NCBI GenBank assembly: GCA_029953675.1
Contig: JAMWBK010000012.1
Location: 1,091,868-1,155,867, forward strand
Source: Rhodosorus marinus CCMP1338
Taxonomy: Eukaryota; Plantae; Rhodophyta
Reading direction: 5' to 3'
DNA: 64,000 bases
The translations under genes and the position numbers were made by a program. Positions 1,725-58,984 of the stretch are shown one piece after another; position 1 is the first letter of the stretch, and every line of letters starts with the position of its first letter. The notes beneath the pieces are model-generated. The model was not told the origin of the DNA, made no database searches, and worked only from the letters and a program-made list of their open reading frames with translations.

Positions 1725-1741
1725 CGGACTCCGGACGAGGG

Positions 1742-29443: not shown

Positions 29444-29744
29444 ACCCTTCATCGGGAGACTCTGCCGTTCGAATAAGTAGAAGGTCCTGGGTAGTATGCT
29501 CCATACTGTGGATTTATTGATAGAGGAAGTAAACATCACCACGATGGGTCTTAAAATCAGGTATTACGAGCGCAAATGTAGCTAGGGTCGCTGGGAACAG
29601 GGATCCACTCATGGGGACTCGAAAGCCGCGAAGTTTTACCCAATTTATGAGCTCGACGAGACAACCTAGCGAACCCGGCCAGGTCCTTACATAGATTTCC
29701 AACCACTAGTTTGAAAAATTGGACTTTTCAAGGAAGCACACATC

Positions 29745-32545: not shown

Positions 32546-32599
32546 ACGATAGAAGAGAGCCAGGGGGGGGGGACTCCAGCTTTCTGTGGAACCCTCTTC

Positions 32600-33120
32600 A
32601 TAATTTTAGACTTTCTTACACTTTTTAGACTTTATTACACTTTTTACACTTCCTTACTCTTTTTAGACTTTCTTACACTTTCTAGACTATCTTACCCCTT
32701 TTAGACTTTCTTACATTTTTCACTCTTTTTACACTTTTCTCACTTTTCACACTTTTCACACTTTTCACACTTTTCACACTTTTTGCACTTTTTGCACCTT
32801 TCCCAGTGTTTTTTCCTTTTACACTTTTAACACTTTTTAACACTTTCTAACACTTTCTAACACTTTTTAACACTTTTTAACACTTTTCACACTTTTTAAC
32901 ACTTTTCACACTTTTCACACTTTCCACACTTTCCACGCTTTCCACGCTTTCCACACCTTCCACACTTTCCACACTTTCCACACTTTCCACGCTTTCCACA
33001 CTTTCCACACTTTTTCACTCTTTTTTACACTTTTCCGGCTTTTTCCACTCTTTCCGCATTTTCCCCTTTTCCCATTTTTTCGCACTTTTTCGCACTTCCT
33101 CACACTTTTTTGCACTGCAT
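32600..33120. repeat. Pyrimidine-rich minisatellite (TTTTAGACTTTCTTACAC-like units, then ~9-bp CACACTTTY units)
   Basis: Directly visible tandem degenerate units. Confidence 0.85.
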
Positions 33121-37653: not shown

Positions 37654-38829
37654 ATGTTTTCGCTGACGACGGCCTCTGCGGTGGTAATTGCTTTTTGCAT
37701 TGCGATGACCAGAGCACAAGTCATCAACTTGAACTGCTATGGAGACCTTCACATGCAAGTGCGAAACGCTCCGGTAGGGGCCGAGCTTGTGGGGAGTACA
37801 GGTTGTACCTTTACACTATCTCGAGCGGTTAAGATTATGAAACCTTTGCGCATCAGAAACTTCAGGGCCCAGCTGCGGCCTGGTCTCGGCAATACGGCAG
37901 CGATTGTAATCTCTTCCCGAGGTGTGCAATTAATCGACTTTGAGTTGATCGGGAACAAGCACACAGTGTCATTCGAGGATCGGGAGTCTCTTCTTCGCAT
38001 AAACGCAGGAGGCTTTTCAATTGTGAGCGGTGCATTCGTCAACTCATCCAGGGATGGGATTACTGTTGTACCGGCGAGAAGCACTCGCACAGCAATCAAT
38101 GCCGGTTCGATAAGAAACATTTATGGTTATGGCGTCGAAAGAGATGTTGTGGCTATCAACTCACGCCATGGACTAGTTACTTCCAAGATCTACATAAGTG
38201 GAGTCGAGGTGTATGACAGTGCACAGAAGGGCGCCGTGGAAGTCGCTGATGGATGTCAGTGGATACATGTTCAAGATGTATTCTGTGAACGATGCTTCTA
38301 CGTTGTTTCTATCCAAGATCATATCCCGAGATGGGCCGAAGATGACCCAGAGAGTCAAATGCAAGCCAACCATCATATCCGGTTCTATAACATTCGAGGA
38401 AGAGATCTCATGTACGGTGTTATCTCCGAAACGAGCCCAATAGGACACTCGGATATAATTTTTAGTAGTCTCGCCTTCTCGGATTGTAGACAAGCTGTAT
38501 ACCTGAGATATTTGAACAGCGTCAGTGTGAGATTCCTAAGGATCGAGCGGCCAAAGACTGGCAGCCCCCTAGTTTTGGCTGAGGCATGTAATCGGGTCTC
38601 ATTGAGCAATGCAGTCTTCCGAAATAGTACGCACAGAGGAATTGCAATCGCGACGAATGACTGTACTGAGCTCTACGTGGGATCCGTTGTACTAGAACGT
38701 GACACCCAGTTCTGGGCAGGGTTAAGGGTTGAGGTTGCTCCTTCATTTATAGGCATTCCTGTTACTGCTGCGTATAATCGCTTTGATGCAGCTAGGAACG
38801 GTGAGATCATCCAACGTTTTAGTGGGTGA
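37654..38829 (+). CDS. Secreted protein, probable right-handed beta-helix (pectin-lyase-like) fold
   Basis: Signal peptide, 391-aa open frame, recurring alternating beta-strand pattern (DGITV, DVVAI, GAVEV, IRFYNIRG); function not assignable. Confidence 0.75.
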   Translation: MFSLTTASAVVIAFCIAMTRAQVINLNCYGDLHMQVRNAPVGAELVGSTGCTFTLSRAVKIMKPLRIRNFRAQLRPGLGNTAAIVISSRGVQLIDFELIGNKHTVSFEDRESLLRINAGGFSIVSGAFVNSSRDGITVVPARSTRTAINAGSIRNIYGYGVERDVVAINSRHGLVTSKIYISGVEVYDSAQKGAVEVADGCQWIHVQDVFCERCFYVVSIQDHIPRWAEDDPESQMQANHHIRFYNIRGRDLMYGVISETSPIGHSDIIFSSLAFSDCRQAVYLRYLNSVSVRFLRIERPKTGSPLVLAEACNRVSLSNAVFRNSTHRGIAIATNDCTELYVGSVVLERDTQFWAGLRVEVAPSFIGIPVTAAYNRFDAARNGEIIQRFSG

Positions 38830-39190: not shown

Positions 39191-41282
39191 TTACTGGACT
39201 TTACTAGCATAGCCTGAAGCGCTACGCAGGGCGTGAAGATGAGCTAATAACTAGGGAGGGAAGCATGCAACCCCAGGCGCCGATGGTGCGCCTCGGAAAG
39301 CATGTCGCTGGAATATCGCCAAAGGGAGACACTTAAACGCCTCAAGAACGAATGGTTTAATCGGGGCTGAAAAAAAAAACCCCGAGGGGAAAAAAAGACT
39401 AAGCGCGGCGAAGTACTCGCGCCTCCAACATCAAAGCGGCATTCATGCGCCACAGCAGGAAACTTAAGCGGGTAAACAACGATTGAAGACGGTCAGGGCG
39501 TTCGCGGAACAACTCCCGAAGCCAGCGAGAACCAACAGAGTCCATGAACCCAAAGCACTCAATGATCAGGGGTACCAAGCGATGTGCTAGTGCCGAAGCA
39601 CGAACACCAGGGGAAGACAAAGCCCCCGCGTATTTGATCTCTTTGCGGCGTCTCATGCTGGCGGCGGCAGATCCACGGCGCTCCCCCGCAGCCGGGAGAT
39701 AACGACTAGCTTGAGGGTTAGGAACAGCAAGATCAACGTATGTGGTACGGCGGCTGTCGTCACAGGTGATCACCAGGTCGGCTACACGGCGTTCATCATT
39801 TTGAAAGTCCGCGACGGGTAAAGGTTTCTCACGTTCGATTTCCAGACCGGCTTGCCGGACTATAGGCCGAAGTTCCCGGTATAACAGGTTCAAGATCCGT
39901 GTATGGCGGCGGGTTCGAGCACCTTTCACCGCCGGGCAACTAGCGAGCATGTGGGCGCCAAAATCTGCGTTGTCTTCAGTCTGAGAGCAGAGAGGGCACG
40001 ACGAACCAATCTCGTACGGCCAAGGGGGCTGATGTAAGCCGAGGTATAAGCGCAGGGAAGTACGCACTTCGAAATCCGACAGTGTGAGTGGCGGAAAGGC
40101 TGGTACGGTCATGAGCCACTGAGAGCTAATAACCCCTCCAAGACTACGTAGGCGGGCGCGAGCGCGGGAAGATGAGACCATCTGCGCGAGGAGTCGGCCA
40201 TATGAAGCACGGTGCAAGTCCCAAGAAAGGATATTCTGCAGCGCATCCGTGCGTGCTTGAGCTCGGCTCCCAGCGCGCTGGGAATCATCAGGAGGATCAA
40301 CTGGAACTTCTTCTTCTGCGGGAGAGCGCCAAACATTCAGTAGGATGCTCAGCAAAACATTTCCGCAACCACTCTAAACCCGACTTATCCACGTGACCAA
40401 AGCTTTCCACAATGAATGGCTGGAACCGGTGAGAGCGACCCTCAGCGCAAGGCAGACTGGCCATGCTCTCAGCATACCGTCGTTCCTTAACTCTTCGAAC
40501 GGTTGAAGCCGCGGCCCCCCCGGCGGCGGGCGGCTGCGGTGAGGTGGGCGCTGGCCCCGGGGCAGGTAATCGCAAGGTCCACATATGTTGAGCGTCTGGC
40601 AGCAGCGTCGGAGACGAGGAGATCGGCTATACAACGGGGCGGTGCAGAGTCCGAGATTGATCTGGGCAGTTCCGACTCAACCTCAACCGTATGCCCTATC
40701 CGAGTCAAAAATTCGCTGAGGATGTACTTGAGGCGAGTGTGACGCCTCGTACGGAGACCTCTCAACAGTCCGCAGGAACCCAGGAAGTGGTAGCCACAAG
40801 CGTCAATCCGACTCTCACATCCCTGACAGAAAGACGGCCGATTAGAGTGCCACGGAGCCAGTGGCAAACCGAGATAGATCCGTGCGGCAGAACGGAACTG
40901 GAAAGCATCGAGCGGATGACTCAATGACGACGGTAGAGTGGTTAACCACAAGTGCGAGAGATGGCCTCCCATGCCGCGGAGACGAGCGGCAGTGATAGGC
41001 GGCGTGAGAGGAGAATTGAGCATGACTGTGTGAGCGGCACTGTGTTGGCCCCAGGTGAGGCTATGTTGAATCACATCAGTGCGGGAGCTCCACAATCGGC
41101 TCAAACCCGGGTAGTCTGCAACAGGGGACCCGGGGCTAGCCTCTCCGTCATCGGCAAGAACTCGGTCGAGGGGAGAATCCTCAATCGCTTCAGCTCGTCC
41201 CCATAACAGCTCCCTCCAGGAACGAAAGCGGGACCTATTTGCGTCCGGCACGGCGTTAAACCTCCTGAACGCGTGTTGAAGA
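39191..41282 (-). mobile_element. 5'-truncated family C element split by a family B insertion
   Basis: C sequence ctcaaga|gcgcc resumes at 40323 after the B block; tail ttactggactttactagc at ~39191. Confidence 0.9.
39348..40321 (-). mobile_element. 5'-truncated family B element nested in family C
   Basis: Near-identical to 16455-17430; AGA duplicated at 39345-39347 and 40323-40325. Confidence 0.92.
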
Positions 41283-42320
41283 GACTGAACTAGAGCGGGA
41301 GGTTTCGGCAGAACGCTCACCAGACACATACGAGCCGTCGGAGCAACGATGGTCGACTGCACAGCTGGCGGACCAGATCTGTGCATAGTCGCGAACAATA
41401 CAACGGAGGCTCGGACCAGAAACCCCGCCGCGGATCTCGGTTTTTGCAGGGTAACTACCCTGCAAAAACCGCGAGAAACATCTCTTCGAAGCGCACCGGG
41501 CGAGACTGCAGCTTGGAATAATGGTTCAATACATCAAACCCTCTCTCGAGAGGCACACCATTGTTCATTCCAAAGCTTGGTCACCAACCCACGAATCTCC
41601 CCTGAAAACCGAGCTCGAATACGGTCCGCCGCGGGATCCGGGTCGGGAGTCTGGCTGCGTGAAATACCAACGCTGACACCGAAAAAATTGAGTGCGGTTG
41701 AGATGCAGGTAAACGTTCGACAAGTGCTGGGGCCGCCAATTCCGGGATTGTTGACCACCGAGAAGTGCACTAGTTGCCGGAGTAAAAACGGAAGGACTGG
41801 GGTACAACGGTTTCATCACTGCCCAACATCAACTGGACTGTGGCAACGTAGGCACGACGAAATCTGCAGAGAGTTGGCAAGGTGGCTGAGGCGATGGCGG
41901 ATACGCGGCGAGAGCTGCGGAGAAGTGGAAAATCGCTCACTTCAAGGAAGCGATGGTGATCGAGAAACCGGATGACAAGTTCATCCCGATAGCGATAGAG
42001 ACGTTTGGGCGTACGGGGCAAATGGCACAAGAGTTCCTCCGCGACAGCTGCAAACACTTACTACACAGGAGTGAGGAGCCGAGAGACGTGAGATCGCAGA
42101 TAAACCGGCAACTATGGCGAGGTAACGCAGAGATAGCACTAGGCGCTTTGCGCGTGGACCAGTTGGAGAATCCGCTGGTGCCCGTTTTTTCTTTTGAACG
42201 TAGCATGAGACCCCGGTAGCGGGGTTCCAGTAAGTTTCTCCCTAGATAGGATTAGACGTAGTGTTGCGCTGCAGTAGGCAGCTGCCCAGTACAGCTTACG
42301 GTTACGTTATTCTGGGGTTA
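41283..42320 (+). mobile_element. Family A 3' fragment (knuckle, RLE, 3' UTR) ending in telomeric repeats
   Basis: CTSC...RFHHC, RRHDE, PIAIETFG; ends ggttacgttattctggggtta. Confidence 0.9.
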
Positions 42321-42618
42321 GTGCAGGCTTTGCCACGTCTTGGGGTAAGAGAGAAGATTTTGGACGGCCTTGTTTGTGGAAAACAACGGTAAAAGTTTAT
42401 ACACAGTTACACGTATGATTGTGAGGGAGGTACGCGGGCCGTACCCCGAACCTCTTGTGATCCCGGGCCTCGGGTACCCGGGAAATGGAGAATGAGCACC
42501 AGCAACAGCCTGCAGGAGACGCGCAGGAAGCTAGGACCATCGCAGATCTGAATTCATAAAACAGAGCAGAGAGGCAGGCTGCAGCCGACCCAGCCGCCGC
42601 TTTTCTCCATCAGCTACG
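42321..42618 (+). mobile_element. Family A 5' fragment (start of ORF1, ATG 42415), truncated
   Basis: atgattgtgagggaggtacgcgggccgtaccccgaacctcttgt is identical to 127-170. Confidence 0.85.
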
Positions 42619-42699
42619 ACCGAAAAAGAAACAAAACCCCAATCCTCGACAACAACTCCTCCCACTTACTATACATTGATCCACTTCGTAACCCCTTAC

Positions 42700-45600
42700 T
42701 ACTGGACTTTACTGGACTTTACTGGACTGGACTTTACTAGCATAGCCTGAAGCGCTACGCAAGGCGTGAAGATGAACTAATAACTAGGGAGGGAAGCATG
42801 CAACCCCAGGCGCCGATGGCGCGCCTCGGAAAGCATGTCGCTGGAATATCGCCTAAGGGAGACACTTAAACGCCTCAAGAGCGCCAAATATTCAGTAGGA
42901 TGCTCAGCAAAACATTTCCGCAACCACTCTAAACCCGACTTATCCACGTGACCAAAGCTTTCCACAATGAATGGCTGGAACCGGTGAGAGCGACCCTCAG
43001 CGCAAGGCAGACTGGCCATGCTCTCAGCATACCGTCGTTCCTTAACTCTTCGAAGGGCTGAAGCCGCGGCCCCCCGGCGGCGGGCGGCTGCGGTGAGGTG
43101 GGCGCTGGCCACGGGGCAGGTAATCGCAAGGTCCACATATGTTGAGCGTCTGGCAGCAGCGTCGGAGACGAGGAGATCGGCTATACAACGGGGCGGTGCA
43201 GAGTCCGAGATGGATCTGGGCAGTTCCGACTCAACCTCAACCGTATGCCCTATCCGAGTCAAAGATTCGCTGAGGATGTACTTGAGGCGAGTGTGACGCC
43301 TCGTACGGAGACCTCGCAACAGTCCGCAGAAACCCAGGAAGTGGTAGCCACAAGCGTCAATCCGGCTCTCACATCCCTGACAGAAAGACGGCCGATTAGA
43401 GTGCCACGGAGCCTGTGGCAAACCGAGATAGATCCGTGCGGCAGAACGGAACTGGAAAGCATCGAGACGATGACTCAATGACGACGGTAGAGTGGTTAAC
43501 CACAAGTGCGAGAGGTGGCCTCCCATGCCGCGGAGACGAGCGGCAGTGGTAGGCGGCGTGAGAGGAGAATTGAGCATGACTGTGTGAGCGGCACTGTGTT
43601 GGCCCCAGGTGAGGCTATGTTGAATCACATCAGTGCGGGAGCTCCACAATCGGCTCAAACCCGGGTAGTCTGCAACAGGGGACCCGGGGATAGCCTCTCC
43701 GTCATCGGCAAGAACTCGGTCGAGGGGACAATCATCAATCGCTTCAGCTCGTCCCCATAACAGCTCCCTCCAGGAACGAAAGCGGGACCGATTTGCGTCC
43801 GGCACGGCGTTGCACCTCCTGAACGCGTGTTGAAGACCATCATAAATTGTCAAAAGCGGGGGCGGCAGGGTCACTGGATCCTCGTTGGTCAAAGCTCGAG
43901 CCAAGAGGCAGGCACTTCGCATCCGGAAGGTCACCAACGTTCGCAGCGCGGTAGCCCAGGAGGCAACCGCCGCTGGCGAGCATACCAGCCCACGGTCTGC
44001 GACGCCGAATCCCCCTAATCGCAACGGTAGAGCGATCTGTGCACGAATAAAGTCCCTGTCGGGAGCAGCTTCAAGATCGAGGGGCTCATCCAAGAGCGTT
44101 CCCCAGTGTTGCAGGGTCATTTCGTCGGCTTTAGCCGCGATCCACGAGCCCCAAGCTGGAGGCAGGCTGCGCAACCAGTAGTTGAGTCTGGGACCGGCAC
44201 AAAAGCGGGAAAGCAAGCAGGCCGATTGCAGCATGCTGTCGGGTAGGTGCTGAATGGCGTCGGTGAGTTGCTTGTGCCGTGCCAAAACTCGCTCGCAGGA
44301 TGCTTGGACAAAGTTGTCAGTCCCCAATCCGACGCCGTGGTGTTCGAACCCTTCACGTTCGCTGATTAGTCGCAGAGTGGGTGGCAGAGAGGTCAGCGAC
44401 ACGTCCCTCGGGGGGAGAAAGCGACATTTTTCTGTTTCCACAGTCAAACCGACGCGACGTGCAACGTGCAACGCCGTGCAAGCGGCCTTTACTAGCATAG
44501 CCTGAAGCGCTACGCAAGGCGTGAAGATGAACTAATAACTAGGGAGGGAAGCATGCAACCCCAGGCGCCGATGGCGCGCCTCGGAAAGCAGGACTTTACT
44601 AGCATAGCCTGAAGCGCTACGCAAGGCGTGAAGATGAACTAATAACTAGGGAGGGAAGCATGCAACCCCAGGCGCCGATGGCGCGCCTCGGAAAGCATGT
44701 CGCTGGAATATCGCAAAGGGAGACACTTAAACGCCTCAAGAGCGCCAAATATTCAGTAGGATGCTCAGCAAAACATTTCCGCAACCACTCTAAACCCGAC
44801 TTATCCACGTGACCAAAGCTTTCCACAATGAATGGCTGGAACCGGTGAGAGCGACCCTCAGCGCGAGGAAGACTGGCCATGCTCTCAGCATACCGTCGTT
44901 CCTTAACTCTTCGAAGGGCTGAAGCCGCGGCCCCCCGGCGGCGGGCGGCTGCGGTGAGGTGGGCGCTGGCCACGGGGCAGGTAATCGCAAGGTCCACATA
45001 TGTTGAGCGTCTGGCAGCAGCGTCGGAGACGAGGAGATCGGCTACACAACGGGGCGGTGCAGAGTCCGAGATGGATCTGGGCAGTTCCGACTCAACCTCA
45101 ACCGTATGCCCTATCCGAGTCAAAAATTCGCTGAGGATGTACTTGAGGCGAGTGTGACGCCTCGTACGGAGACCTCGCAACAGTCCGCAGGAACCCAGGA
45201 AGTGGTAGCCACAAGCGTCAATCCGGCTCTCACATCCCTGACAGAAAGACGGCCGATTAGAGTGCCACGGAGCCTGTGGCAAACCGAGATAGATCCGTGC
45301 GGCAGAACGGAACTGGAAAGCATCGAGACGATGACTCAATGACGACGGTAGAGTGGTTAACCACAAGTGCGAGAGGTGGCCTCCCATGCCGCGGAGACGA
45401 GCGGCAGTGGTAGGCGGCGTGAGAGGAGAATTGAGCATGACTGTGTGAGCGGCACTGTGTTGGCCCCAGGTGAGGCTATGTTGAATCACATCAGTGCGGG
45501 AGCTCCACAATCGGCTCAAACCCGGGTAGTCTGCAACAGAGGACCCGGGGATAGCCTCTCCGTCATCGGCAAGAACTCGGTCGAGGGGAGAATCCTCAAT

Positions 45601-48600
45601 CGCTTCAGCTCGTCCCCATAACAGCTCCCTCCAGGAACGAAAGCGGGACCGATTTGCGTCCGCCACGGCGTTGCACCTCCTGAACGCGTGTTGAAGACCA
45701 TCATAAATTGTCAAAAGCGGGGGCGGCAGGGTCGCTGGATCCTCGTTGGTCAAAGCTCGAGCCAAGAGGCAGGCACTTCGCATCTGGAAGGTCACCAACG
45801 TTCGCAGCGCGGTAGCCCAGGAGGCAACCGCCGCTGGCGAGCATACCAGCCCACGGTCTGCGACGCCGAATCCCCCTAATCGCAACGGTAGAGCGATCTG
45901 TGCACGAATCAAGTCCCTGTCGGGAGCAGCTTCAAGATCGAGGGGCTCATCCAGGAGCGTTCCCCAGTGTTGCAGGGTCATTTCGTCGGCTTTAGCCGCG
46001 ATCCACGAGCCCCAAGCTGGAGGCAGGCTGCGCAACCAGTAGTTGAGTCTGGGACCGGCACAAAAGCGGGAAAGCAAGCAGGCCGATTGCAGCATGCTGT
46101 CGGGTAGGTGCTGAATGGCGTCGGTGAGTTGCTTGTGCCGTGCCAAAACTCGCTCGCAGGATGCTTGGACAAAGTTGTCAGTCCCCAATCCGACGCCGTG
46201 GTGTTCGAACCCTTCACGTTCGCTGATTAGTCGCAGAGTGGGTGGCAGAGAGGTCAGCGACACGTCCCTCGGGGGGAGAAAGCGACATTTTTCTGTTTCC
46301 ACAGTCAAACCGACGCGACGTGCAATCGCTTCGATCGCGGTCAGTCCCCTAGCCAGGGTGTCAGGGGTGCCCAGCAATGTTACGTCATCGTGGTACGCGC
46401 AGATTCGAAGATCCGAGACCTCAGTCGAAAGACGTAAAAGTACGAGCTGTAGGGCACAGGCATGAAGAAGAGGTCCGCAAGGGTCGCCTTGTTGGACGCC
46501 AGTATGTGCTTGAAAAACAGTGCCCTCCGTTGTCAAGTAGGGGAGGCTCTCCCCTCCGTAAATACCCGATAGAAACGGCCACGCCTCCGGAAACACACGT
46601 CGGAGCACCTCTAGCGCATGCGTCCGCGACACGCTGTTGAATGCGTTCCGGAAATCAACCACCAAGACTCCCCACTCCGGCCTACTGGCGCGTTCTAGCT
46701 CGATCCCATGGGTGATCAGTTCACAACCCCCAGAAAATCCCACCCCTACTTGCAAGGGCGCCATAAAAGCTGTGACGCGCTGGCGAAGGCGCTGGCATAG
46801 CCACCTCCCGGCTAACTTCCGTAGGCTCTCCACCATCCCGATCGGCCGGAGACGCGGGTGGGCCGGCTGGTGGTCAGGTTTCGTGAGCAAGCAAAGCTGT
46901 GCCTGCCGGAGATGTTCCTATGGCGCAGACGCACCCGATACGCCCTGGAACAACTTGTTAAGGATCCTCAGAGGCGCGCTCTTGCCAGGCTGGCTCAGGG
47001 CCTGCAATAGCTCTGTTCTTAGTCCGGAGGGTCCGGGACAGCGTCCCCGACGCGAGGTACGAAGCAAATCCTCCAGGTCAGACTCACTGAGCGTCAGATC
47101 GATGCGAAACCTGGCCAACTCCGGACGGTCCAAGAATGCCTCGAATTCAGGGGACAAATCCACGTCGGACTCAGGGAACAAAGACGACACCGTCTGGGCG
47201 AGACTATCATCGTAGGGAAGGACAGGCGCCTGGCCCTCCAAAACCCGCGCCGCTCGACTTAAATCGCCCACTGCTACCAATTTCTGTACTCGAGCCGGCA
47301 CGGGCGACACTGTGCCATGCCGAGTCCGACGGGCGGATGGTGCTGACGACGCCAAATAGCTGCGCTGTAGTACTTCGAAGTCTCCCTTCAAGAACAGGGC
47401 CAGTCGGTCTCGTACTCGCCATCTGCGCTCCGATGTGTGAATGGGGGCCAGAATCAGGCGCGGCATGACCCCCAGAAAAACCCAAATGACTGTGTCCCGA
47501 ATGTTGCGAGCCAGGCTCGTGAAGATGAAATCGAGAATGGTTCCAGCTACTAGAAGGTCTCCACGAGGAAGGACTTTACTGGACTTTACTGGACTTTACT
47601 AGCGGACTTACTAGCGGACTTTACTGGACTTTACTAGCATAGCCTGAAGCGCTACGCAAGGCGTGAAGATGAACTAATAACTAGGGAGGGAAGCATGCAA
47701 CCCCAGGCGCCGATGGCGCGCCTCGGAAAGCATGTCGCTGGAATATCGCCAAAGGGAGACACTTAAACGCCTCAAGAGCGCCAAATATTCAGTAGGATGC
47801 TCAGCAAAACATTTCCGCAACCACTCTAAACCCAACTTATCGACATGACCAAAGCTTTCCACAATGAACGGCTGGAACCGGTGAGAGCGACCCTCAGCGC
47901 AAGGCAGACTGGCCATGCTCTCAGCATACCGTCGTTCCTTAACTCTTCGAAGGGCTGAAGCCGCGGCCCCCCGGCGGCGGGCGGCTGCGGTGAGGTGGGC
48001 GCTGGCCACGGGGCAGGTAATCGCAAGGTCCACATATGTTGAGCGTCTGGCAGCAGCGTCGGAGACGAGGAGATCGGCTATACAACGGGGCGGTGCAGAG
48101 TCCGAGATGGATCTGGGCAGTTCCGACTCAACCTCAACCGTATGCCCTATCCGAGTCAAAAATTCGCTGAGGATGTACTTGAGGCGAGTGTGACGCCTCG
48201 TACGGAGACCTCGCAACAGTCCGCAGGAACCCAGGAAGTGGTAGCCACAAGCGTCAATCCGGCTCTCACATCCCTGACAGAAAGACGGCCGATTAGAGTG
48301 CCACGGAGCCTGTGGCAAACCGAGATAGATCCGTGCGGCAGAACGGAACTGGAAAGCATCGAGACGATGACTCAATGACGACGGTAGAGTGGTTAACCAC
48401 AAAAGCGAGAGGTGGCCTCCCATGCCGCGGAGACGAGCGGCAGTGGTAGGCGGCGTGAGAGGAGAATTGAGCATGACTGTGTGAGCGGCACTATGTTGGC
48501 CCCAGGTGAGGCTATGTTGAATCACATCAGTGCGCGAGCTCCACAATCGGCTCAAACCTGGGTAGTCTGCAACAGGGGACCCGGGGCTAGCCTCTCCGTC

Positions 48601-49123
48601 ATCGGCAAGAACTCGGTCGAGGGGAGAATCCTCAATCGCTTCAGCTCGTCCCCATAACAGCTCCCTCCAGGAACGAAAACGGGACCGATTTGCGTCCGGC
48701 ACGGCGTTGCGCCGGCGGAGGGGCTACGCAAGGCGTGAAGATGAACTAATAACTAGGGAGGGAAGTATCTGTAGTGGACTTTACTAGCATAGCCTGAAGC
48801 GCTACGCAAGGTGTGAAGATGAACTAATAACTAGGGAGGGAAGCATGCAACCCCAGGCGCCGATGGCGCGCCTCGGAAAGCATGTCGCTGGAATATCGCC
48901 AAAGGGAGACACTTAAACGCCTCAAGAGCGCCAAATATTCAGTAGGATGCTCGGCAAAACATTTCCGCAACCACTCTAAACCCGACTTATCCACGTGACC
49001 AAAGCTTTCCACAATGAATGGCTGGAACCCGTGAGAGCGACCCTCAGCGCAAGGCAGACTGGCCATGCTCTCAGCATACCGTCGTTCCTTAACTCTTCGA
49101 AGGGCTGAAGCCGCGGCCCCCCC
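42700..49123 (-). mobile_element. Head-to-tail array of six 5'-truncated family C copies
   Basis: 3' ends at ~42700, 44487, 44591, 47571, ~48723 and 48776; lengths about 1.78, 0.10, 2.93, 1.14, 0.05 and 0.35 kb. Confidence 0.92.
44617..47500 (-). pseudogene. Longest family C ORF2 fragment (RT, knuckle, RLE); in-frame TAG at 46918-46920 and a 1-bp deletion near 44715
   Basis: CPGPSGLR, RPIG, VDFRNAFN, GVQQGDP, AYHDD; ORFs 46918..47466 and 44617..46890 are in the same frame. Confidence 0.9.
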
Positions 49124-49172
49124 GTTATTGCACATCCCGATGGACTCTTGCTCCATCGGGATGTGCAATAAC

Positions 49173-50702
49173 TATTAAGATCAAAAGGGTGTTGCACCTC
49201 CAGAGATTTTGGCACAGCCCGAGCATAATTTTGCATAGCCGGACATTGCTGGAAGGTGGAGACGTCACACACTACGCAGAAGCATTCCCAGTCATCGGGA
49301 CCAGCAGCACACGGACAACGTACGCTCAGCGCACTGTCCAAAATACTCCAGCTCCAGAATCAGAGGCTCAACTCCGACCAGCAGGACGCCCGGGCTCACA
49401 GACCCAGCAGGCAGCGCTGCGACAGCTGCACACCACAGTGGGAGGGTCCTCCTGGGGACCTGAAACCAAACCGATCCTTGCCACCCTTCGAAACGTCCCC
49501 CCCCCCCCAAGGCAGGATGATGTGGCACCTTCGGAATTCACCACCGTCCTCTGGCGCGCGCTGGGAATCACAGCCTCTCACATCGCGCATGTGGACTTCA
49601 TGTTACACACGCAAGCTTGCTCTGCCATCCGGATGCAGTGTGCAAAGCGCTATCGCCCGAGGCGTTTTCAGAACAGGGATCTTTGGATCTTTCACACTGA
49701 GACATCCTGACCGGCAAGTGACTCTCCACACAGGACAGGGATTGGAGGCTGACAACCTGCTGGGCTACAACGAAAGGCAAAGGATCGCCCCAGAGGAGAT
49801 CCCAGCCCAGACGCTGCAACGGGCCATACAACAGATCATCAGGATTCGCGCGAGGTTCGGAAAGAGACGTCTGTCGTTCTCTACTCTCGCAGCCATCCAT
49901 GAAACGCTGGTAGAGCGTCTACGAGCGTTACGAGGCCTGCAACATCCACCAGCGGTCGCCTGGGAGAGTGTGGAACTTAGTCTGGGGTACACGATCGCAC
50001 CGATGTACGGTGTGTGAACAACCACACGACTTCAAAGGGATCCAGCGTTTGCATCATTGTCGCACATCATCAGGTATGCGAACTAAGCGTCACGATGAGC
50101 TAAAAACGGAGTTGAGTCGATGGTTGCATCTGTGGAATTTCACAGACTTGCAAGTGGAACCGCAGGGGTTCTTTAGGTAATCAGGGATACGCCCTGACAT
50201 AGTAGGGAGACACCCAACAAGTGGACACGTGTACGTGTTGGACGTGATGGTGACGTCACCACTGCAGCGACAACACTTGCGACAGACCAGCTGGAAGAGT
50301 GGGTATGCGGCAGAGAAAGCAGAACATAGCAAAGTGGCACATTATGCGGAAGCAATCTCGAATGAGGGGGAGAGAGCTGATTTTAGCACAATTTGTGGTC
50401 GAAACCTATGGGCGACCTGACCAGAAGGGCTGGAGTTCCTTCGAAAAGCCACGGCACATCTCCATGATCGGGAGTCGCATTTATCGCCGGTGAGAGAACA
50501 ATTGAATCGTATCCTATAGCAACACAACGCACAGTTGGTACAACACGCGATTGACAAAGACCGGGCAGACCTGTCGATACTCCCACTAGCTAGAAGTTAG
50601 ATGAGACCCCTGGACAGGGGGTCTATAAGTGAGTTTAGAGCGAAGATAGAGTAGTGGTATTTCGCTACGGTAGTTAGCTGCCGAATGAAGGGTATGGGGT
50701 TA
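49173..50702 (+). mobile_element. Diverged family A-type element with a large internal deletion (ORF1 piece joined to knuckle/RLE), ending in GGGGTTA
   Basis: HYAEAFP ORF1 homology; C..C..HHC, RPDI..LDV; 3' UTR gtagtg...cggtagttagctgccgaat. Confidence 0.8.
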
Positions 50703-53520
50703 CCACCACCGTTCCTAAAAGCTCTACGAACAAAGTTCTCCGATTTAACGACTGTCGCTATCCATGACGATATTACGATCGTGGGACCGCTGCAGGGACT
50801 GAAGCAAGACCTAGCCTGGAGCCGAACTATGCTCCCATCTCTAGGGGCCCGCCTACTACTCAACAAATGCACGCTCTACGGCCGAGCCTTGACGACGGCG
50901 CGAGTCATCAATCGCGAGATACCTGGCATACATGTCACCCGAGAAGGTGTGACTATCCATTCGATCCGGATAGGAAACCGGGAATATATCGAGCACGAGT
51001 GCCGTGCGCTTCAAAATAAGCACGAAAAGCTCATCAAGGAAATAGCACAGCTACCGCAACATGAACTTAACGCACAGGTCGCATTGTTCAGGTACTGCGC
51101 GGAAACGCGGCTAGATTACCTGCTACGATGCCTAGCCTACTCGTTCGGCCGCAGTCTGGCACGGGAGGGGGACACCATGACGAGATATAATCTGGAAACC
51201 TTGCTCGGAGGCCTCGCTACCTGTGGCATGGAGGACGAGGAGCACCTGGGACACATGTGGGAACAGATTGCGCTGACTTTGCCGGTGGGGGGGATTAGGG
51301 TTCGCTACTAGACGGCGTATCCAACCGATCGCTTACTACTCGGCTTGGACAAATACCTTTCGAAGCAATACAGGCGACTGGCCTTACATTACTGAGCTGC
51401 AGAGGCAGGTCTATACAGATAGAACTCCGGCTACGAACACCGCGACACGACTACAATGGTCCACAGAACACCTTGCAGACCAGATAAAATCATCTGCTCG
51501 AGCGATGCGACGCAGGCTGCGGCCCGAAACTCTGCCGCGGATCAGAAGACTGGCCACCCTGCAGCAGACGAGGGAAAACCCCCGAGGAGACGCCCCAGAA
51601 GACTGTGGCGATTGGAATAATGGTTCTACACAACAAACTTGATGAGCTTTTCGTGCTTATTTTGAAGCGCACGGCACTCGTGCTCGATATATTCCCGGTT
51701 TCCTATCGGGATCGAATGGATAGTCACGCCTTCTCGGGTGACATGTATGCCAGGTATCTCGCGATTGATGACTCGCGCCGTCGTCAAGGGCTCCGATCGA
51801 GCTCAGCTTTTTCGACTCCAACGTCGGCAGTTCGCGCAGCCAGACTCCCGATCAAGAGCCCGCCGCGGACCTGATTCGAGCGCGATGTTCGCCAGAGATG
51901 GGCGGATTGTTAACCAGGCGTTTGGAACGCTGAATGGCGTGCCTCCCGAGAGAGATAGCACAGCTACCGCAACATGAACTTAACGCACAGGTCGCATTGT
52001 TCAGGTACTGCGCGGAAACGCGGCTAGATTACCTGCTACGATGCCTAGCCTACTCGTTCGGCCGCAGTCTGGCACGGGAGGGGGACACCATGACGAGATA
52101 TAATCTGGAAACCTTGCTCGGAGGCCTCGCTACCTGTGGCATGGAGGACGAGGAGCACCTGGGACACATGTGGGAACAGATTGCGCTGACTTTGCCGGTG
52201 GGGGGGATTAGGGTTCGCTACTAGACGGCGTATCCAACCGATCGCTTACTACTCGGCTTGGACAAATACCTTTCGAAGCAATACAGGCGACTGGCCTTAC
52301 ATTACTGAGCTGCAGAGGCAGGTCTATACAGATAGAACTCCGGCTACGAACACCGCGACACGACTACAATGGTCCACAGAACACCTTGCAGACCAGATAA
52401 AATCATCTGCTCGAGCGATGCGACGCAGGCTGCGGCCCGAAACTCTGCCGCGGATCAGAAGACTGGCCACCCTGCAGCAGACGAGGGAAAACCCCCGAGG
52501 CGACGCTCCAGAAGACTGGCGATTGGAATAATGGTTCTACACAACAAACTCTCTCTCGGGAGGCACACCATTCAGCATTCCAACGCATTGTTAACAATCC
52601 GCGCATCTCTGGCGAACATCGCTCTCGAATCAGGTCGGCGGCGGGCTCTGGATCGGGAGTCTGGCTGCGCGAACTGCCGACGTTGGAGCCGAAGAAGCTG
52701 AGCTCGATCGAAATGCAGGTGAATATCCGACAACTACTGGGGCTACCGATTCCAGGGCTGCGAACTACGGAAAAATGTACTCGATGCCGTGGTAAACACG
52801 GCATCGCCTCAAATGGAGTACAACGCTTTCATCATTGCCCCACGTCGACTGGGCTGTGGCAACGTAGGCATGACGAGATATGCACGGAGATCGCAAGGTG
52901 GCTGAACCGGTGGAACTTTGTGGACATCGAGCAGGAGCCAGAGAAGTACTTTGAAAATTACGGGCTACGGCCAGACATCATTGCTACGCATCCGAGGACA
53001 TTTCAACGGTATGCGCTGGACGTGACGGTTGTGTCTCCTTTGCAAGGGAAGTATCTGAGGCGTAGTCAGGATGAGAGTGGATATGCAGCAAGATGTGCGG
53101 AGAGGTGGAAGAAAGTGCACTACAAGGAGGCGATGACGATAGAACACCCGGATGACAAGTTCATCCCAATTGCAATAGAAACATTTGGGCGGACTGGACC
53201 GATGGCACAGGAGTTTCTGCGGGACAGCTGCAAGCATTTGTTGCACCGGAGCCTAGATCTGAGCGATTTAAGATCGCAGATAAACCGGCAACTTTGGCGA
53301 GGTAATGCGGAGATAGCGCTAGGCGCTTTGCGCGTAGACCAGTTGGAGAATCCACTGGTGCCTGTTTTTTCTTTAGAACGTAGGATGAGACCCCGGTAGC
53401 GGGGTTGGAGTAAGCATTCCCCTAGATAGCGATAGAAGTAGTGTTACGCTGCAGCAGGCAGCTGCCCAGTAAAGTTTACGGTTACGTTAGTCTGACGTTA
53501 GTCTGGGGAGTCTGGGGTTA
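50703..53520 (+). mobile_element. 5'-truncated family A element with an internal duplication and inversion, ending in telomeric repeats
   Basis: VAIHDD, intact RLE ORF 52683..53399 (RPDII..LDV, K..HY, PIAIETFG), tail ggttacgttagtctg. Confidence 0.9.
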
Positions 53521-53958
53521 CGAACGTTAAGGGGCTAACAAGGACAAATATACGATGAGGTTTAAGGAAAGCTTTATGATCGAGAAGGAGATGCTGGGAC
53601 AGTACCCAGAACCTTTCCGCCACCCGGGCACCAATGGCCCTGGCCCAGGCGAAGAGGGGATGGCGACACCGAATGGGAGTCGGATGCCAGAACCGAGCGG
53701 CAGGACCACAATCACCCAGGATTTACAAGCAGCGAACACACAGGAGGCTTACGGGATGGAGACTCAAGAGGCAACTGGACCTGCGGCAGCCTTTTTGCAC
53801 CAACTTCGCGCCTTCGACCAGTGCTATCAGGACTTGGGAATTGGTGAAGCAGTTATCGCGGACTTCTACCAGGCTGTATTCAAACTCTACTCACGGATTA
53901 ACAGCACCACTGAACTCGAAGGAATTACCGCACGTCTCTCCGAGCTTTCAGCAAAACC
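53521..53958 (+). mobile_element. Family A-type 5' fragment (ORF1 N terminus), truncated
   Basis: GQYPEP and AFLHQLRAFDQCYQDLGI...FYQAVFKLYSRINS match ORF 127..753. Confidence 0.85.
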
Positions 53959-53972
53959 TTAGTCTGGGGTTA
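53959..53972 (+). repeat. Interstitial telomeric repeat TTAGTCTGGGGTTA
   Basis: 14 of 14 match to the terminal repeat. Confidence 0.85.
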
Positions 53973-55410: not shown

Positions 55411-58301
55411 GAATGAATGAATGAATGAATGAATGAATGAATGGTTTAATCGGAGGCTGAAAAAAAAACCCCGAGGGGAAAAAAAGACTAAGCGCGGCGA
55501 AGTACTCGCGCCTCCAACATCAAAGCGGCATTCATGCGCCACAGCAGGAAACTTAAGCGGGTAAACAACGATTGAAGACGGTCAGGGCGTTCGCGGAACA
55601 ACTCCCGAAGCCAGCGAGAACCAACAGAGTCCATGAACCCAAAGCACTCAATGATCAGGGGTACCAAGCGATGTGCTAGTGCCGAAGCACGAACACCAGG
55701 GGAAGACAAAGCCCCCGCGTATTTGATCTCTTTGCGGCGTCTCATGCTGGCGGCGGCAGATCCACGGCGCTCCCCCGCAGCCGGGAGATAACGACTAGCT
55801 TGAGGGTTAGGAACAGCAAGATCAACGTATGTGGTACGGCGGCTGTCGTCACAGGTGATCACCAGATCGGCTACACGGCGTTCATCATTTTGAAAGTCCG
55901 CGACGGGTAAAGGTTTCTCACGTTCGATTTCCAGACCGGCTTGCCGGACTATAGGCCGAAGTTCCCGGTATAACAGGTTCAAGATCCGTGTGTGGCGGCG
56001 GGTTCGAGCACCTTTCACCGCCGGGCAACTAGCGAGCAGGTGGGCGCCAAAATCTGCGTTGTCTTCAGTCTGAGAGCAGAGAGGGCACGACGAACCCATC
56101 TCGTACGGCCAAGGGGGCTGATGTAAGCCGAGGTATAAGCGCAGTGAAGTACGCACTTCGAAATCCGACAGTGTGAGTGGCGGAAAGGCTGGTACGGTCA
56201 TGAGCCACTGAGAGCTAATAACCCCTCCAAGACTACGTAGGCGGGCGCGAGCGCGAGAAGATGAGACCATCTGCGCGAGGAGTCGGCCATATGCAGCACG
56301 GTGCAAGTCCCAAGAAAGGATATTTTGCAGCGCATCCGTGCGTGCTTGAGCTCGGCTCCCAGCGCGCTGGGAATCATCAGGAGGATCAACTGGAACTTCT
56401 TCTTCTGCGGCAACCACTGGGTCAATCTCCCCTAGAACAGGTTCAGGCGCAGGACGAATCCCCGGGGCGGAGCCTCGAGAGCGGTCAAATACAGCTCGCC
56501 AGTCAGGAAGACGGGGTTGAACGGTTTCGGGGAGACTAGTACAGGAATTCAGGGCGGTTTGGAGCTCCAGAAACAAGTCTTGGGCGCTTTCCGGTACGCT
56601 GGGAAGCAAGACACCCCGCGAGAGGCTCGCCATCAAATTGCGGAACTTCGAGATACCCAAGCTGCTCAAAGTGGGAAGTGCGGTTCCCCAGGCCCCTACT
56701 GCAGCTGCAGGTTGGACCACAACACGATTGCAGAGGCCCAGTCCCCCCAATCGCAATGGGAGGCCTACCTGGGCGCGCACAACATCACAGGTGGGTCGCG
56801 GCAGAGCGCTCAGCTCTTCATCGAGAAAATACCCCAGGTCACGGAAACTTTCAGCATCCGCACGAGTGGCCAACCACCGGCCCCAATGAGTTGGAAGTGA
56901 GCGAAGCCAATAGGTTAACCGCTGACTGCAACAATACCGAAACAGCAACAACGAGCACTGGAGAAAGCCCGGAGGTAGCCGTCGAAGCTCTGCAACCAGC
57001 TGTCTGTGCTTACCGAGGAGCTGCAGCAACTCGCCTTCAACGAAGGACGGCGACCCGTAGGGGATGCCTAAGTGGACAAAACCATCCGGTCTCCAAATAT
57101 CCTGGAACGACGCAGGTACCTGCTGCTCTTGTGCAGCTACACCTCCCCAGTAGAACGATTTGTGATGATTAACCTCCAGGTCAACCCGCGAAGCCAAGGA
57201 GCGGAGACGATCATAAGCGAGTGCTAGAGTATCAGGGGGCCCCAGGAGGCACACGTCGTCGTGGTATGCAACCGTACGAACCTGCGGGAATTCGGAGCGA
57301 AGACAAAGCAAGACGAGTTGTAGTCCACAGGCATGTAGGAAAGGGGACAAGGGATCACCCTGTTGTACCCCTGTGCGCGCCGCAAACGTGTGTGAGGAAG
57401 CGCCAAGGGTGTCATAGGTAGCCCCACGACCAAGCGGAGAATAAATTCTACTAACAAAGGGAAAGCCTACAGGGAAGACTTCGCGCACCACGTGCATGAG
57501 AGCCGGACGAGAGACGCGGTTGAACGCATTGGTAAAATCTACAGAGAGGAGCCCAGAATCTGGGGAGAACGCCATTTCCGAACGGAGTAAAACAGACAAC
57601 AACTCACAGCCACCACGATAGCCCACGCCTAACTGCACGTGCCCAAAGAAACGGCGGGATTCGGGAACCAGGATTTTCACTAACCATCGCGCCGCCAATT
57701 TGCGGACCACCTCAACCAGGCCAATAGGGCGAATAGCAGGGCTCGAGGCCGTGTGGCCGGGCTTCGAAAGCAGACACAACTGCGAACGCCCGACCAAGAA
57801 CCACGCACACTCACACAGGGGATCACCATTCACAAGCGCTTCGACCACCCACGCCAACGCCTTCAAACCTTCATCACTTAAGAAACGGAGATATTCCACC
57901 CGCAGCCCCGAGGGCCCTGGGGAACGGCCCTTCGGAGCATCATGAACCAACTCACGCACCGCCTCCAGATTGACCACTAACCGCGCACTGGGATGTGGCG
58001 CGGCGCGGTACTCTTCCAACACTGATTCAAACGAGGAGTCCCAAGGGGAGCCTTCCGAGGGAAAGAGCAAACGGAGCGGTGAAGAAAGATCATCGGAGTA
58101 TGGAACCACAGGTTGCCGCTGCTGGAGGATCCCGGCTGCCCGCCGCAGATCACCGCCTGCCACCGCGTGACGCGCCCGATTCTGTCGAGAAGACCTAAAA
58201 GCTGAGGAAGCACTAGGAGAAAAGGAAGAGAGAGAAGCGAAATAAAGACGTTCGAGGTCCTCAAAGTCGCCGGAAAGGAACATTTGCAGTTTTCGGCGAG
58301 G
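55411..58301 (-). mobile_element. 5'-truncated family B element with (GAAT)8 tail on + and an intact RT-RLE frame (55488..58283)
   Basis: Near-identical to 16460-19320; possible TSD TATGAAT (55408-55414, 58306-58312). Confidence 0.95.
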
Positions 58302-58619: not shown

Positions 58620-58980
58620 TGTGTAATAGCCGGAGAGCTACTTCATGTGGCATGCGCGGTCAGCTATCCCACCTATGGCTAACCACTCTGCCCTGTACAC
58701 CAGGCCAACGACTGGACGCCTTCCAGTTCCGGACTGCGGCACGCATCTTGGGTTTGCCACAGGTCTCTTGGCATTCCAATCGCCCTTCCTTCTGCCAAGG
58801 TTGTGCGCGCCGTAACGACGGATGTGGGTACCATTGTCAGCAAAGAAACCCCTAATGGGTTGTGCGGCTACGTTCTAAGATAGGGACGATGTCATAGTCT
58901 GCTTCGTCGACATGACGAGCCTGGGTGGCAAGGATAGCGTTTCCTTTCCGTAGAGTGCGGTTCAAGATCGCCCGAGCCTC
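58620..58980. mobile_element. Family C-like fragment (+) fused to an inverted family A-type 3' end (-)
   Basis: MRGQLSHLWLTTLP..CQGC; 58838-58975 is the reverse complement of ~63320-63460. Confidence 0.75.
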
Positions 58981-58984
58981 ATTT

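Follow-up and report, generated by a model that had tools for sequence, protein, structure and literature searches.

An array of six 5´-truncated family-C retroelement copies in the red alga Rhodosorus marinus lies inside ORF1 of a resident, telomere-targeted element, and is best explained as a single composite insertion into that element and not as a terminal addition to a chromosome. The way in which it formed is less certain. We tentatively favor, at a probability of about 0.45, one episode of nick or break repair during which an R2-like reverse transcriptase (RT) switched templates five times. The array is an ordinary kind of structure, built from a family that had not been described before. 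The DNA analysed, hereafter the window, comprises 64 kb and ends where its contig ends, so that it represents the last 64 kb of that contig.

Anatomy of the array

A preliminary description of this DNA had reported six near-identical copies with proximal 3´ ends and distal 5´ truncations, and that anatomy is real. The units occupy 42696–49122 on the minus strand and measure 1736, 107, 2980, 1085, 45 and 347 nt, listed here from 3´ to 5´ on that (sense) strand. The C open reading frame, with its RT and CCHC/endonuclease region, is encoded on the minus strand, and the 3´ ends consequently face lower coordinates, away from the repeat tract at 63519–64000. All six units are truncated at the 5´ end, each at a different point, and five of them begin at the exact 3´ end of the element, ...GCTAGTAAAG(T/G)CC, the exception being c3a.

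The first unit, c1, consists of a 33-nt tail of AGTAAAGTCC-type repeats (42696–42728) and a body of 1736 nt (42729–44464), with an open reading frame at 42777–44498. The 19-nt filler that follows (44465–44483, GCTTGCACGGCGTTGCACG) contains the first 7 nt of c1 re-copied twice, such that TTGCACG is seen three times at this junction, a stutter as judged against the native sequence in c2. Unit c2a (44484–44590) represents the last 107 nt of the element and directly abuts the 3´ end of c2 (44591–47570). The latter is the longest unit (2980 nt) and spans the RT domain, CCHC motif and putative restriction-like endonuclease region; it is truncated inside ORF2 and has one in-frame stop (46918–46920) and a 1-nt deletion near 44715. 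Unit c3 has a tail of 55 nt (47571–47625) made of re-copied terminal 10–13-mers, among them entire 13-mers, GCTAGTAA(A)GTCC, and a body of 1085 nt (47626–48710). A 12-nt filler (48711–48722) leads to c3a (48723–48767), a stretch of 45 nt from within the 3´ region of C that lacks the last ~25 nt, and an 8-nt filler (48768–48775, ACTACAGA) to c4 (48776–49122, 347 nt). All of these features are on the minus strand. Exactly one terminal unit is present in each of c2, c2a and c4, without a tail remnant on either side. Neither target site duplications (TSDs), as had been noted before, nor target or telomere sequences were found between the units, and the window holds no second copy of the array.

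The host element and its junctions

The preliminary description had family A ORF1 breaking off where the array starts. This is correct for the left edge, but the same ORF1 resumes on the far side. The left flank (42322–42621, plus strand) begins directly after a telomere-unit remnant at 42300–42321 and comprises the 5´ UTR and ORF1 codons 1–74 of the host, as identified by tblastn and by alignment to a full-length relative, X (74–697 plus 5352 onward), and to a fragment, F3 (53523–53958). Homology stops after ...FLHQLR at 42619–42621. The right flank (49173–49976, plus strand) was recognized by tblastn (X2 aa 6–225, E=6e-44) and DNA alignments; its alignment to X is firm from 49264 and homology to X stops exactly at 49976. 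The two pieces of ORF1 are collinear and agree in strand and order, from which it follows that the array is an internal insertion. At least ~150 bp of the host target was lost.

The c1 tail is separated from the host break by a filler of 74 nt (42622–42695) that has no resemblance to the conserved ORF1 segment FDxCYQDLGI...LSELSxKP found at the same point in X and F3, and no other copy in the window. On the minus strand, the last 9 nt of the filler (42687–42695) are GGGGTTACG, a part of the telomere unit, but this match is only weakly significant, with ~7.75 expected per window; the shared 11-mers number 3 against about 2.4 expected by our own estimate. Next to the C tail the filler starts GGGGTTACGAA, as do the telomere remnant and the start of the F3 5´ UTR at 53514. 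As proof of a telomeric origin, the remnant at the c1 junction was downgraded, since chance alone would give about eight nine-mer matches per window.

At the other edge, a perfect palindrome of 49 nt (49124–49172; 21-nt arms, 7-nt loop) sits precisely at the join of the c4 5´ end and the right flank. It occurs once in the window and folds as a DNA hairpin of -24.4 kcal/mol (z=-6.8). The target deletion, the filler and the palindrome make it quite likely that a local break played a part, in which case its ends were joined again and not capped. The 3´-truncated host is itself capped by a telomere-unit remnant (49977–49989, plus strand, TTAGTCTGGGGT(A)), a 12-mer match for which we estimate, in the way used for the 9-mer, about 0.12 chance occurrences per window, and is followed by a 5´-truncated element of host type at 50001–50690.

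The chromosome end

The last part of the contig (63519–64000, plus strand) is a tract of (GGTTACGTTAGTCTGG)n, a 16-nt repeat in about 30 copies whose G/T-rich strand points 5´ to 3´ toward the contig end; this tract is probably the telomere. According to the assembly paper, telomeres are present on 12 contigs and the assembly was made with ONT and HiFi reads; telomere sequence and retroelements are absent from its main text. A survey from 2013 lists the telomere types of mesophilic unicellular red algae as still unidentified. Our literature search did not find the 16-nt repeat in any paper, and the exact two-unit pattern had no match among metagenome contigs.

The array is 14.3 kb away from the terminal tract. 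The element adjoining the tract has its 3´ end distal, a polarity opposite to that of the C array. Remnants of the 16-nt repeat are found at element boundaries in the window, where the 3´ end of each telomere-targeted (H-type) element is, as a rule, followed by a G-strand unit. Two 3´-truncated elements stop at 49976 and 53958, and in both the cap consists of units of the 16-nt repeat in identical register (TTAGTCTGGGG), not of C. The capping seen in the window is done by telomerase-type repeats. This subtelomere is heavily rearranged. Rfam and tRNA scans of the window gave no matches.

Family C and its source variants

Family C is classed as an R2-like non-LTR retrotransposon on its predicted domain order, in which a CCHC motif and a restriction-like endonuclease region come after the RT. 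The RT is of non-LTR type (Pfam RVT_1, E=1.2e-15), and the closest solved structures in the PDB are R2 proteins (E=1.6e-12), with a second, weak stretch over the CCHC/endonuclease region. That region aligns weakly to the R2 endonuclease region (i-E 1.9) and has no Pfam model match; it comprises the CCHC motif CQGCESRIDACGYHFLGSC (C-x2-C-x9-H-x4-C) followed by RRH...E...ADLLV...VDLAI. The N-terminus, where an APE domain would be sought, is missing in all C copies. The nearest protein relatives are just 35% identical and the database relatives include one named SLACS RT; the contig of one relative (P0001) is a single element, and another (P0002) is in an unrelated animal-like contig. A comparison of the C protein with metagenome contigs gave no match. 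Eight C copies, six of them with a complete 3´ region, have the 3´ end given above in common, together with variable tails of the same repeat type, differing 5´ ends and no LTRs. Synthesis of C cDNA starts at the exact 3´ end of the RNA, ...GCUAGUAAAGUCC.

The array units are 98.4–99.0% identical in pairwise comparisons across the 1085 nt they have in common. Within this stretch, c1 has 5 private changes, c2 has 6 and c3 has 10, and equal ages are not rejected by a rough chi-square test (p about 0.4). The private substitutions in c3 are synonymous in 8 cases and non-synonymous in 2, and since the excess is synonymous it arose before insertion. A T at ref 2075 is common to c1 and c2, and a G>A variant in c3a is also present in a C fragment at 59003–59110. 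Taken together, the SNPs reveal at least three source variants and rule out a single template RNA. The preliminary description had proposed phasing SNPs in search of such a single template and had offered one multi-jump event of target-primed reverse transcription as a possible origin; the latter survives as the best single explanation, although with more than one RNA. Tandem DNA duplication or unequal crossing-over is ruled out by the six different lengths and the five restarts at the exact element 3´ end, and nested insertion of a new copy within an old one by the fact that no unit is split in two. A true nested case is found nearby, where a 976-nt piece of another family is located within the C copy c0 with a 3-nt overlap.

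A second composite insertion

A two-unit composite at 58826–61339 (minus strand) consists of a diverged C copy, C´ (~59111–~61200), and the last 108 nt of C (59003–59110), and its host is a minus-strand telomere-targeted element. The flanks at 61201–61339 and 58826–58989 align to the terminal element at 63097–63235 (89%) and 63303–63467 (94%), respectively, which implies a target deletion of 67 bp. No TSD was found at this composite, and its 5´ junction shows a stutter (CATTGGG twice). The break point at -107/-108 is the same in c2|c2a and in the C fragment at 59003–59110, and an internal duplication is ruled out for the second composite, in which two different families are joined. No special fold that would account for a stop at -107 was found in the last 200 nt of C (z=-0.48). 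The 3´ junction lies at the target AAGTAAGTGAGG (58989); similar AGTAAG-like targets are found beside c1 (AGTAAGG) and at 12059 (CAGTAAGTGC). An odd AATAAAGCC unit follows the C fragment at 59003.

In this one subtelomere, C-type loci number four on the minus strand and five on the plus strand, so that the orientation, which the preliminary description had put forward as a check, is not uniform, and C-type copies are also found in non-telomeric sequence. None of the four other C-type tails examined in the window (those of c0, of the plus-strand copy at 24252, of C´ at 12059 and of the C fragment at 59003) has a C-type unit in it or after it, compared to six units at the array site.

Origin of the array

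In the favored scenario, the plus strand of the host would have been nicked or broken after 42621. The host 3´-OH, past ~74 nt of unexplained filler, would then prime reverse transcription of a C RNA to give c1, and five template switches onto further C RNAs would follow, at the 3´ end for c2a, c2, c3 and c4 and at an internal site for c3a. Filler of 0–19 nt, either stuttered or untemplated, would remain from the switches, together with series of terminal 10–13-mers copied anew. In the end, a fold-back (snap-back) step may have attached the cDNA to the host DNA across the break, which would account for the 49-nt palindrome and for the loss of at least ~150 bp from host ORF1. Repeated initiation at the 3´ ends of RNAs would be expected to give the five of six starts at the exact 3´ end, the lack of target or telomere sequence between units, the short stuttered fillers and the re-copied 13-mers. 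The anatomy and strand, the collinear flanks, the deletion, the fillers, the palindrome and the presence of several source variants are seen directly in the sequence; the deposition of all units within one episode, and a switch from RNA to RNA instead of re-insertion at each junction, are what we infer.

We counted several observations in favor of a single episode: the collinear host flanks (ORF1 aa 1–74 to the left, and to the right up to 49976), an independent second composite with the same switch point, the similar decay of c1, c2 and c3, the clustering of six units here while C-type tails elsewhere in the window are untouched, and an RT of the R2 group. RTs of this group are reported to perform end-to-end template jumping in vitro. 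Counted against it were that no feature dates the junctions directly, and that at least three source variants would require several different RNAs to be at hand in one event. The in-vitro jumps take place at RNA 5´ ends, whereas every donor here is truncated. The internal acceptor site of c3a, the 74-nt filler on the priming side and the lack of a special fold at the -107 stop were likewise held against a single episode.

The most serious alternative, which we nevertheless consider unlikely, is serial self-targeted insertion. Each new 5´-truncated copy would have entered at the 3´ end of an older resident C copy, with the AGUAAAGUCC tail of C pairing with AGTAAG-like DNA and resident C tails serving as preferred targets, in several independent events from c4 (the oldest) to c1 (the youngest). 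The 3´ junctions at AGTAAG-like targets (58989, c1 and 12059) are consistent with this, and several source lineages would be natural under separate events. The odd unit past the 59003 fragment could be a remnant of a C´ tail, and the missing 3´ end of c3a a small target deletion from the next insertion. Private changes are also slightly denser in c3 and c4 (0.9%) than in c1 and c2 (0.4–0.5%), but the excess in c3 predates insertion and is uninformative on age. Moreover, five successive hits on one growing array would be needed while the other C-type tails in the window were left untouched, c2, c2a and c4 would have to have kept exactly one terminal unit and no tail remnant, and the identical length of the two short units would still call for a special stop.

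A related proposal sees the array as a repair patch: end-primed reverse transcription would have spanned a chromosomal break inside the host element, with five template switches in a row, and fold-back synthesis would have sealed the patch. In our view this is somewhat more doubtful still. If true, the RT would be able to extend free ends of DNA in vivo, and it might for a time protect broken ends elsewhere in the genome, or heal them.

It is improbable that the array and the adjoining 74 nt were pre-formed elsewhere, e.g. in a telomere tract, and copied or moved as DNA into host ORF1 by ectopic break repair, microhomology-mediated template switching or segmental duplication. The palindrome and target deletion are typical of DNA break repair, the subtelomere is rearranged, and the filler fits the rule of a G-strand unit after a 3´ end, with the unit inverted relative to the chromosome end. 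The start of the filler matches telomere-associated sequence as described above, but over just 9–11 nt and at chance level; the window has no second copy of array or filler, and the question of how the array formed is merely relocated. An assembly artefact is very improbable: the region is dense in near-identical repeats, but each junction is unique in its truncation point, filler, tail and private SNPs, and both ONT and HiFi reads were used. Healing of a telomere-less or broken end by successive terminal additions of C in the manner of HeT-A/TART, with C as a back-up to telomerase, had been the leading suggestion of the preliminary description and fits the polarity, the head-to-tail junctions without TSDs and the host ORF1 broken at the proximal edge, but has next to no chance of being correct given that the same ORF1 continues distal to an array 14.3 kb inside the terminal tract, that the element abutting this tract has the opposite polarity, that C-type copies are present in both orientations, that truncated elements are capped by 16-nt repeat units, and that the partial repeat beside the c1 tail has the wrong orientation for a healed plus-strand end.

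The locus shows no retroelement telomere. If the one-episode reading is true, serial template switching by an R2-type RT has left a natural record here. Such RTs are now engineered for gene insertion, which makes the building of concatemers and the joining of cDNA to broken DNA of practical interest. The wider setting, a red alga with a 16-nt candidate telomere repeat and R2-like elements that target this repeat, is perhaps the more useful lead.

Comparison with known systems

A close parallel is template jumping by Bombyx R2 RT, an enzyme of the same superfamily as judged from the PDB matches. In both cases, most new units begin precisely at the 3´ terminus of the acceptor RNA, a few extra nucleotides are found at the junctions, and the cDNA is long. 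R2 jumping was observed in vitro with full-length RNA donors, whereas for the C array it is deduced from a genomic fossil in which the donors are 5´-truncated and one acceptor site is internal. Natural R2 copies are single and reside in 28S genes.

HeT-A, TART and TAHRE of Drosophila form head-to-tail arrays with variable 5´ truncation, centromere-ward 3´ ends and no TSDs, all of which is seen here. They belong to the jockey (APE) clade, whereas C is probably of the type with the endonuclease after the RT, and they are found in a lineage without telomerase repeats. Their arrays are the chromosome end itself, in contrast to the C array, which lies within another element, has a simple-repeat telomere distal to it and belongs to a family of mixed orientation in this subtelomere.

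Template switching between different RNAs within one insertion is known in vivo from L1, for which chimeric retrocopies (U6-L1 and similar) and endonuclease-independent insertions at breaks have reportedly been described. Target deletions, fillers and a lack of TSDs are likewise seen when L1 insertion accompanies break repair. L1 chimeras are usually two-part and made by an APE-type element, whereas the C array has six units from one family of probable RLE type. Subtelomeric clusters or arrays of non-LTR elements are also known from Chlorella (Zepp), Giardia (GilM/GilT) and Cryptococcus (Cnl1). These resemble the C array in having accumulated 5´-truncated copies in one orientation per cluster near chromosome ends; they are explained by insertion into the poly(A) tails or telomere repeats that belong to resident copies, or by their terminal position.

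MoTeR1 and MoTeR2 of Magnaporthe oryzae encode an RT with a REL-endonuclease, as is predicted for C, and like C form subtelomeric head-to-tail arrays with frequent 5´ truncation, but with TTAGGG tracts between the units and with 5´ ends always nearest the chromosome end (PMC7367193). No telomere repeats are present between the C units. Telomere repeats flanking each unit, as in TRAS/SART and MoTeR elements, are instead a feature of the host family, which in this respect resembles MoTeR1/MoTeR2 and differs from them in having its 3´ ends directed toward the chromosome end.

Structure of the array and identity of family C

Self-comparison, the ORF listing and junction read-outs resolve a head-to-tail array of six family C units on the minus strand, and confirm the copy number, polarity, truncation and similarity given in the preliminary description. 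The first unit, c1, has a tail at 42696-42728 and a body of 1736 nt (42729-44464); a 19-nt filler (44465-44483), in which c1's first 7 nt (TTGCACG) are repeated twice, separates it from c2a (44484-44590), the element's final 107 nt, followed by c2 (44591-47570, 2980 nt). Next come c3, with a body at 47626-48710 and a 55-nt tail (47571-47625) that includes whole re-copied terminal 12-13-mers; a 12-nt filler (48711-48722); c3a (48723-48767), 45 nt without the last ~25 nt of the element; an 8-nt filler (48768-48775); and c4 (48776-49122, 347 nt). Five of the array's units share the exact start ...GCTAGTAAAG(T/G)CC, and the long units show 98.4-99.0% identity across the 1085 nt that they have in common. 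No unit has a TSD, as had been noted earlier. The array is real, and neatly illustrates how an R2-like family, itself undescribed, makes composite insertions.

The c2 ORF contains an RVT_1 domain (E=1.2e-15) and a CCHC motif (C-x2-C-x9-H-x4-C); its best solved-structure relatives are R2 proteins (E=1.6e-12), with a weak second R2 alignment over the CCHC/endonuclease part. The nearest proteins in databases share only 35% identity with C, and one distant match carries the name SLACS RT. These comparisons place C, as a family not described before, in the R2-like, endonuclease-after-RT group, with a putative endonuclease assigned by motifs alone. Comparison with a 1140-aa relative in the window shows every C copy to be 5´-truncated within ORF2. 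Folding of the C 3´ region is unremarkable, and a metagenome scan with the C protein gave no match. The closest protein relative (ENA ERZ1740070, NODE_10134; 35% identity) is encoded on a 4.7-kb contig of 70x coverage that holds both ORF1 and ORF2, and ends (4600-4676) in ...GGAATAAACCACC. This resembles the AATAAAACCACC tails of c0, a further C copy proximal to the array, and of the diverged C-type family C´, so distant relatives of C may have kept the terminal motif in common. The contexts of distant relatives were uninformative.

The insertion site

The array interrupts an element of family A, a telomere-targeted type. Its left flank (42322-42621) comprises the 5´ UTR and first 74 ORF1 codons, and homology ends after ...FLHQLR at 42619-42621. 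The earlier observation that ORF1 breaks off at the array start is thus accurate as far as it goes; the host ORF1 nevertheless resumes beyond the distal edge of the array, with strand and order unchanged. The right flank is aligned at 49264-49935 by tblastn of X, a fuller family A copy at 74-~8440 (E=6e-44), and DNA homology extends to exactly 49976. The segment FDxCYQDLGI...LSELSxKP, directly after FLHQLR, is conserved in X and in F3, a third ORF1 fragment (53523-53958), and is missing from both array flanks, so the host has lost at least ~150 bp. Two odd pieces replace it: a 74-nt stretch (42622-42695) with no relative within the window, and a perfect 49-nt palindrome (49124-49172) exactly at the c4 5´ end, unique in the window and with a hairpin fold of z=-6.8. 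Given the collinear flanks, the host loss and these junction pieces, the array is an insertion at an interior site, with target deletion and repair-type junctions, and not an addition to a free end.

X is itself split in ORF1, at 698-5351, by a gypsy-type LTR retrotransposon that encodes protease, RT, RNase H and integrase, has LTRs TGTTAGAAC...GTTCTAACA and a 5-bp TSD (CACTA), and carries a 22-nt tandem duplication in its right LTR. Plus-strand C-like 3´ ends occur at 10000-10170 (...CAGGCTATATTAGTAAAACCACC) and 32400-32550 (...CAGGCTATGTTGGTAAAGCCACG). The former occupies the place expected for the continuation of X, which may therefore be interrupted or chimeric.

A second composite lies on the minus strand at 59003-~61200, within a minus-strand telomere-targeted element. 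Here a C´ copy adjoins the final 108 nt of C, with the same break point as between c2 and c2a. Its flanks match the terminal element at 63097-63235 on one side and 63303-63467 on the other, implying that 67 bp of target were deleted. A TSD is absent; the 5´ junction stutters (CATTGGG twice), and the 3´ junction is at target AAGTAAGTGAGG, resembling the C tail. This second example shows that family C habitually makes composite insertions accompanied by deletions, and that it can join the RNAs of two families. Unlike the array, 39346-40321 is a true nested insertion: c0 is divided by part of an element whose family has (RTTC)n tails, with an overlap of 3 nt. The 976-nt, 5´-truncated copy divides c0 (39196-41283) 148-151 nt from its 3´ end, in the same orientation; its family has (GTTC)n/(ATTC)n tails, a full-length copy at 16444-~21900 and a second copy at 55427-58301.

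Elsewhere in the window, an inverted duplication (24255-25731 and 27978-29575; 99% over ~1 kb and 84% over a further ~0.5 kb) carries a Spondin_N-domain gene in each arm (24387-25085 minus, 28745-29443 plus), and a C copy on the plus strand (22884-24252) has its 3´ end precisely where one arm begins. A 9-nt minisatellite, (TTTTACACT)n, with ~46 degenerate units (32604-33109) adjoins C-like and other element ends. Host genes sit among the retroelements at 13499-15220 and 37654-38829, one being a sulfatase with a PKD domain; the 391-aa protein of 37654-38829 has no Pfam match and an N-terminus that by eye resembles a signal peptide, and its gene occurs a single time in public assemblies, on this contig. 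Rfam and tRNA scans gave no matches.

The chromosome end

The window forms the last 64,000 bases of the 1,155,867-bp contig JAMWBK010000012.1, which closes with ~30 tandem copies of the 16-nt GGTTACGTTAGTCTGG (63519-64000), broken once by an 8-nt irregularity near 63759; the G/T-rich strand reads 5´ to 3´ toward the contig end. We treat the tract as the telomere and its 16-nt unit as a candidate telomere repeat for Rhodosorus marinus. The CCMP1338 assembly paper reports telomeres on 12 contigs, gives no repeat sequence in its main text and does not describe retroelements, and a 2013 survey lists the telomere types of mesophilic unicellular red algae as unidentified. The repeat was not found in the literature searched, and a metagenome scan with its dimer gave no match.

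Host-type elements follow a strict rule: the 3´ end ...AGTAAAGnnnAC is followed by a G-strand unit (GGTTACG...), and ...TCTGGGGTTA directly precedes the 5´ end. Repeat-flanked junctions lie at 1-73, 42300-42321, 50695-50703, 53480-53522, 61525-61544 (minus strand) and, at the terminal tract, 63519, where the adjoining element (62632-63518) has its 3´ end distal. This pattern suggests that the R2-like elements of family A are specific for the telomere repeat and have stacked up from the chromosome end inward. Two 3´-truncated family A 5´ fragments, ending within or just past ORF1 at 49976 and 53958, each continue into TTAGTCTGGGG... in the same register (49977-49989, 53959-53972), as if 16-nt repeat units had been added de novo to heal terminal breaks. 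None of this supports a role of C as an end-healer. A telomere-targeted copy distal to the array (50884-52710) is internally rearranged: 51039-51639 recurs at 51952-52550 (99%), with inverted copies of 50884-51038 and 52550-52710 in between. This could be a template-switch/twin-priming type inversion or a local misassembly.

Origin of the array

Aligned to c2 as reference, all C copies give a star-like pattern, with 5 (c1), 6 (c2) and 10 (c3) private changes in the common 1085 nt, one derived base common to c1 and c2, and a G>A variant common to c3a and the C fragment at 59003-59110. Of the changes private to c3, 8 are synonymous and 2 non-synonymous, the latter in or beside one codon, while the figures for c1 are 0 and 6; our binomial estimate for the c3 pattern is p ~0.003, assuming ~28% synonymous sites. 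This synonymous excess marks c3 as derived from a separate source lineage that was under selection. Once it is set aside, decay is similar, so equal unit age is not rejected. The SNPs rule out a single template RNA, and their phasing indicates several source lineages.

We tentatively favor a single episode of template switching (probability about 0.45), which retains the one multi-jump TPRT event proposed in the preliminary description, though not from one template. A nick or break in the host would prime cDNA synthesis on a C RNA, the RT would switch five times to further C RNAs, with four switches starting at RNA 3´ ends, and fold-back synthesis would join the cDNA end to the other DNA end. 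One episode would explain the exact unit 3´ starts, the stutters and re-copied terminal 13-mers, the lack of target sequence between units, and the gathering of six units in one place with nothing added to the other C tails; break priming and the fold-back join would account for the repair-type outer junctions. Harder to reconcile with it are that several source lineages took part, that the donors are truncated and that c3a starts internally, and it leaves the 74 nt unexplained.

Serial insertion into resident C tails through tail-target microhomology is a possible but less likely route. It is rather improbable that the array was built elsewhere and moved in as DNA, a reading hinted at by GGGGTTACGAA beside the c1 tail, which is, however, not significant alone. 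Misassembly is very unlikely. Least credible is serial healing of a telomere-less end by C, as first proposed from the array's polarity, given the distal resumption of ORF1, the terminal tract and repeat-capped breaks, and C in both orientations. Because C-type copies occur in either orientation in the rest of the window (4 minus and 5 plus loci in all), polarity relative to the telomere is no evidence of function, and the suggested back-up to telomerase finds no support.

Comparison with known systems

In MoTeR arrays, TTAGGG tracts separate the units and 5´ ends face the chromosome end (PMC7367193); the C array differs from these, and the telomere-targeted elements of family A, with 3´ ends toward the chromosome end, are opposite to MoTeR. 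With HeT-A/TART arrays the C array shares its polarity and the type of its junctions, but it does not share what defines them (terminal position, no simple repeats, uniform orientation), and HeT-A polarity is opposite to that of the telomere-adjoining element (62632-63518). Template jumping is known from R2, as are chimeric or break-associated insertions from L1. It is these that the C array would most resemble in the way it works.
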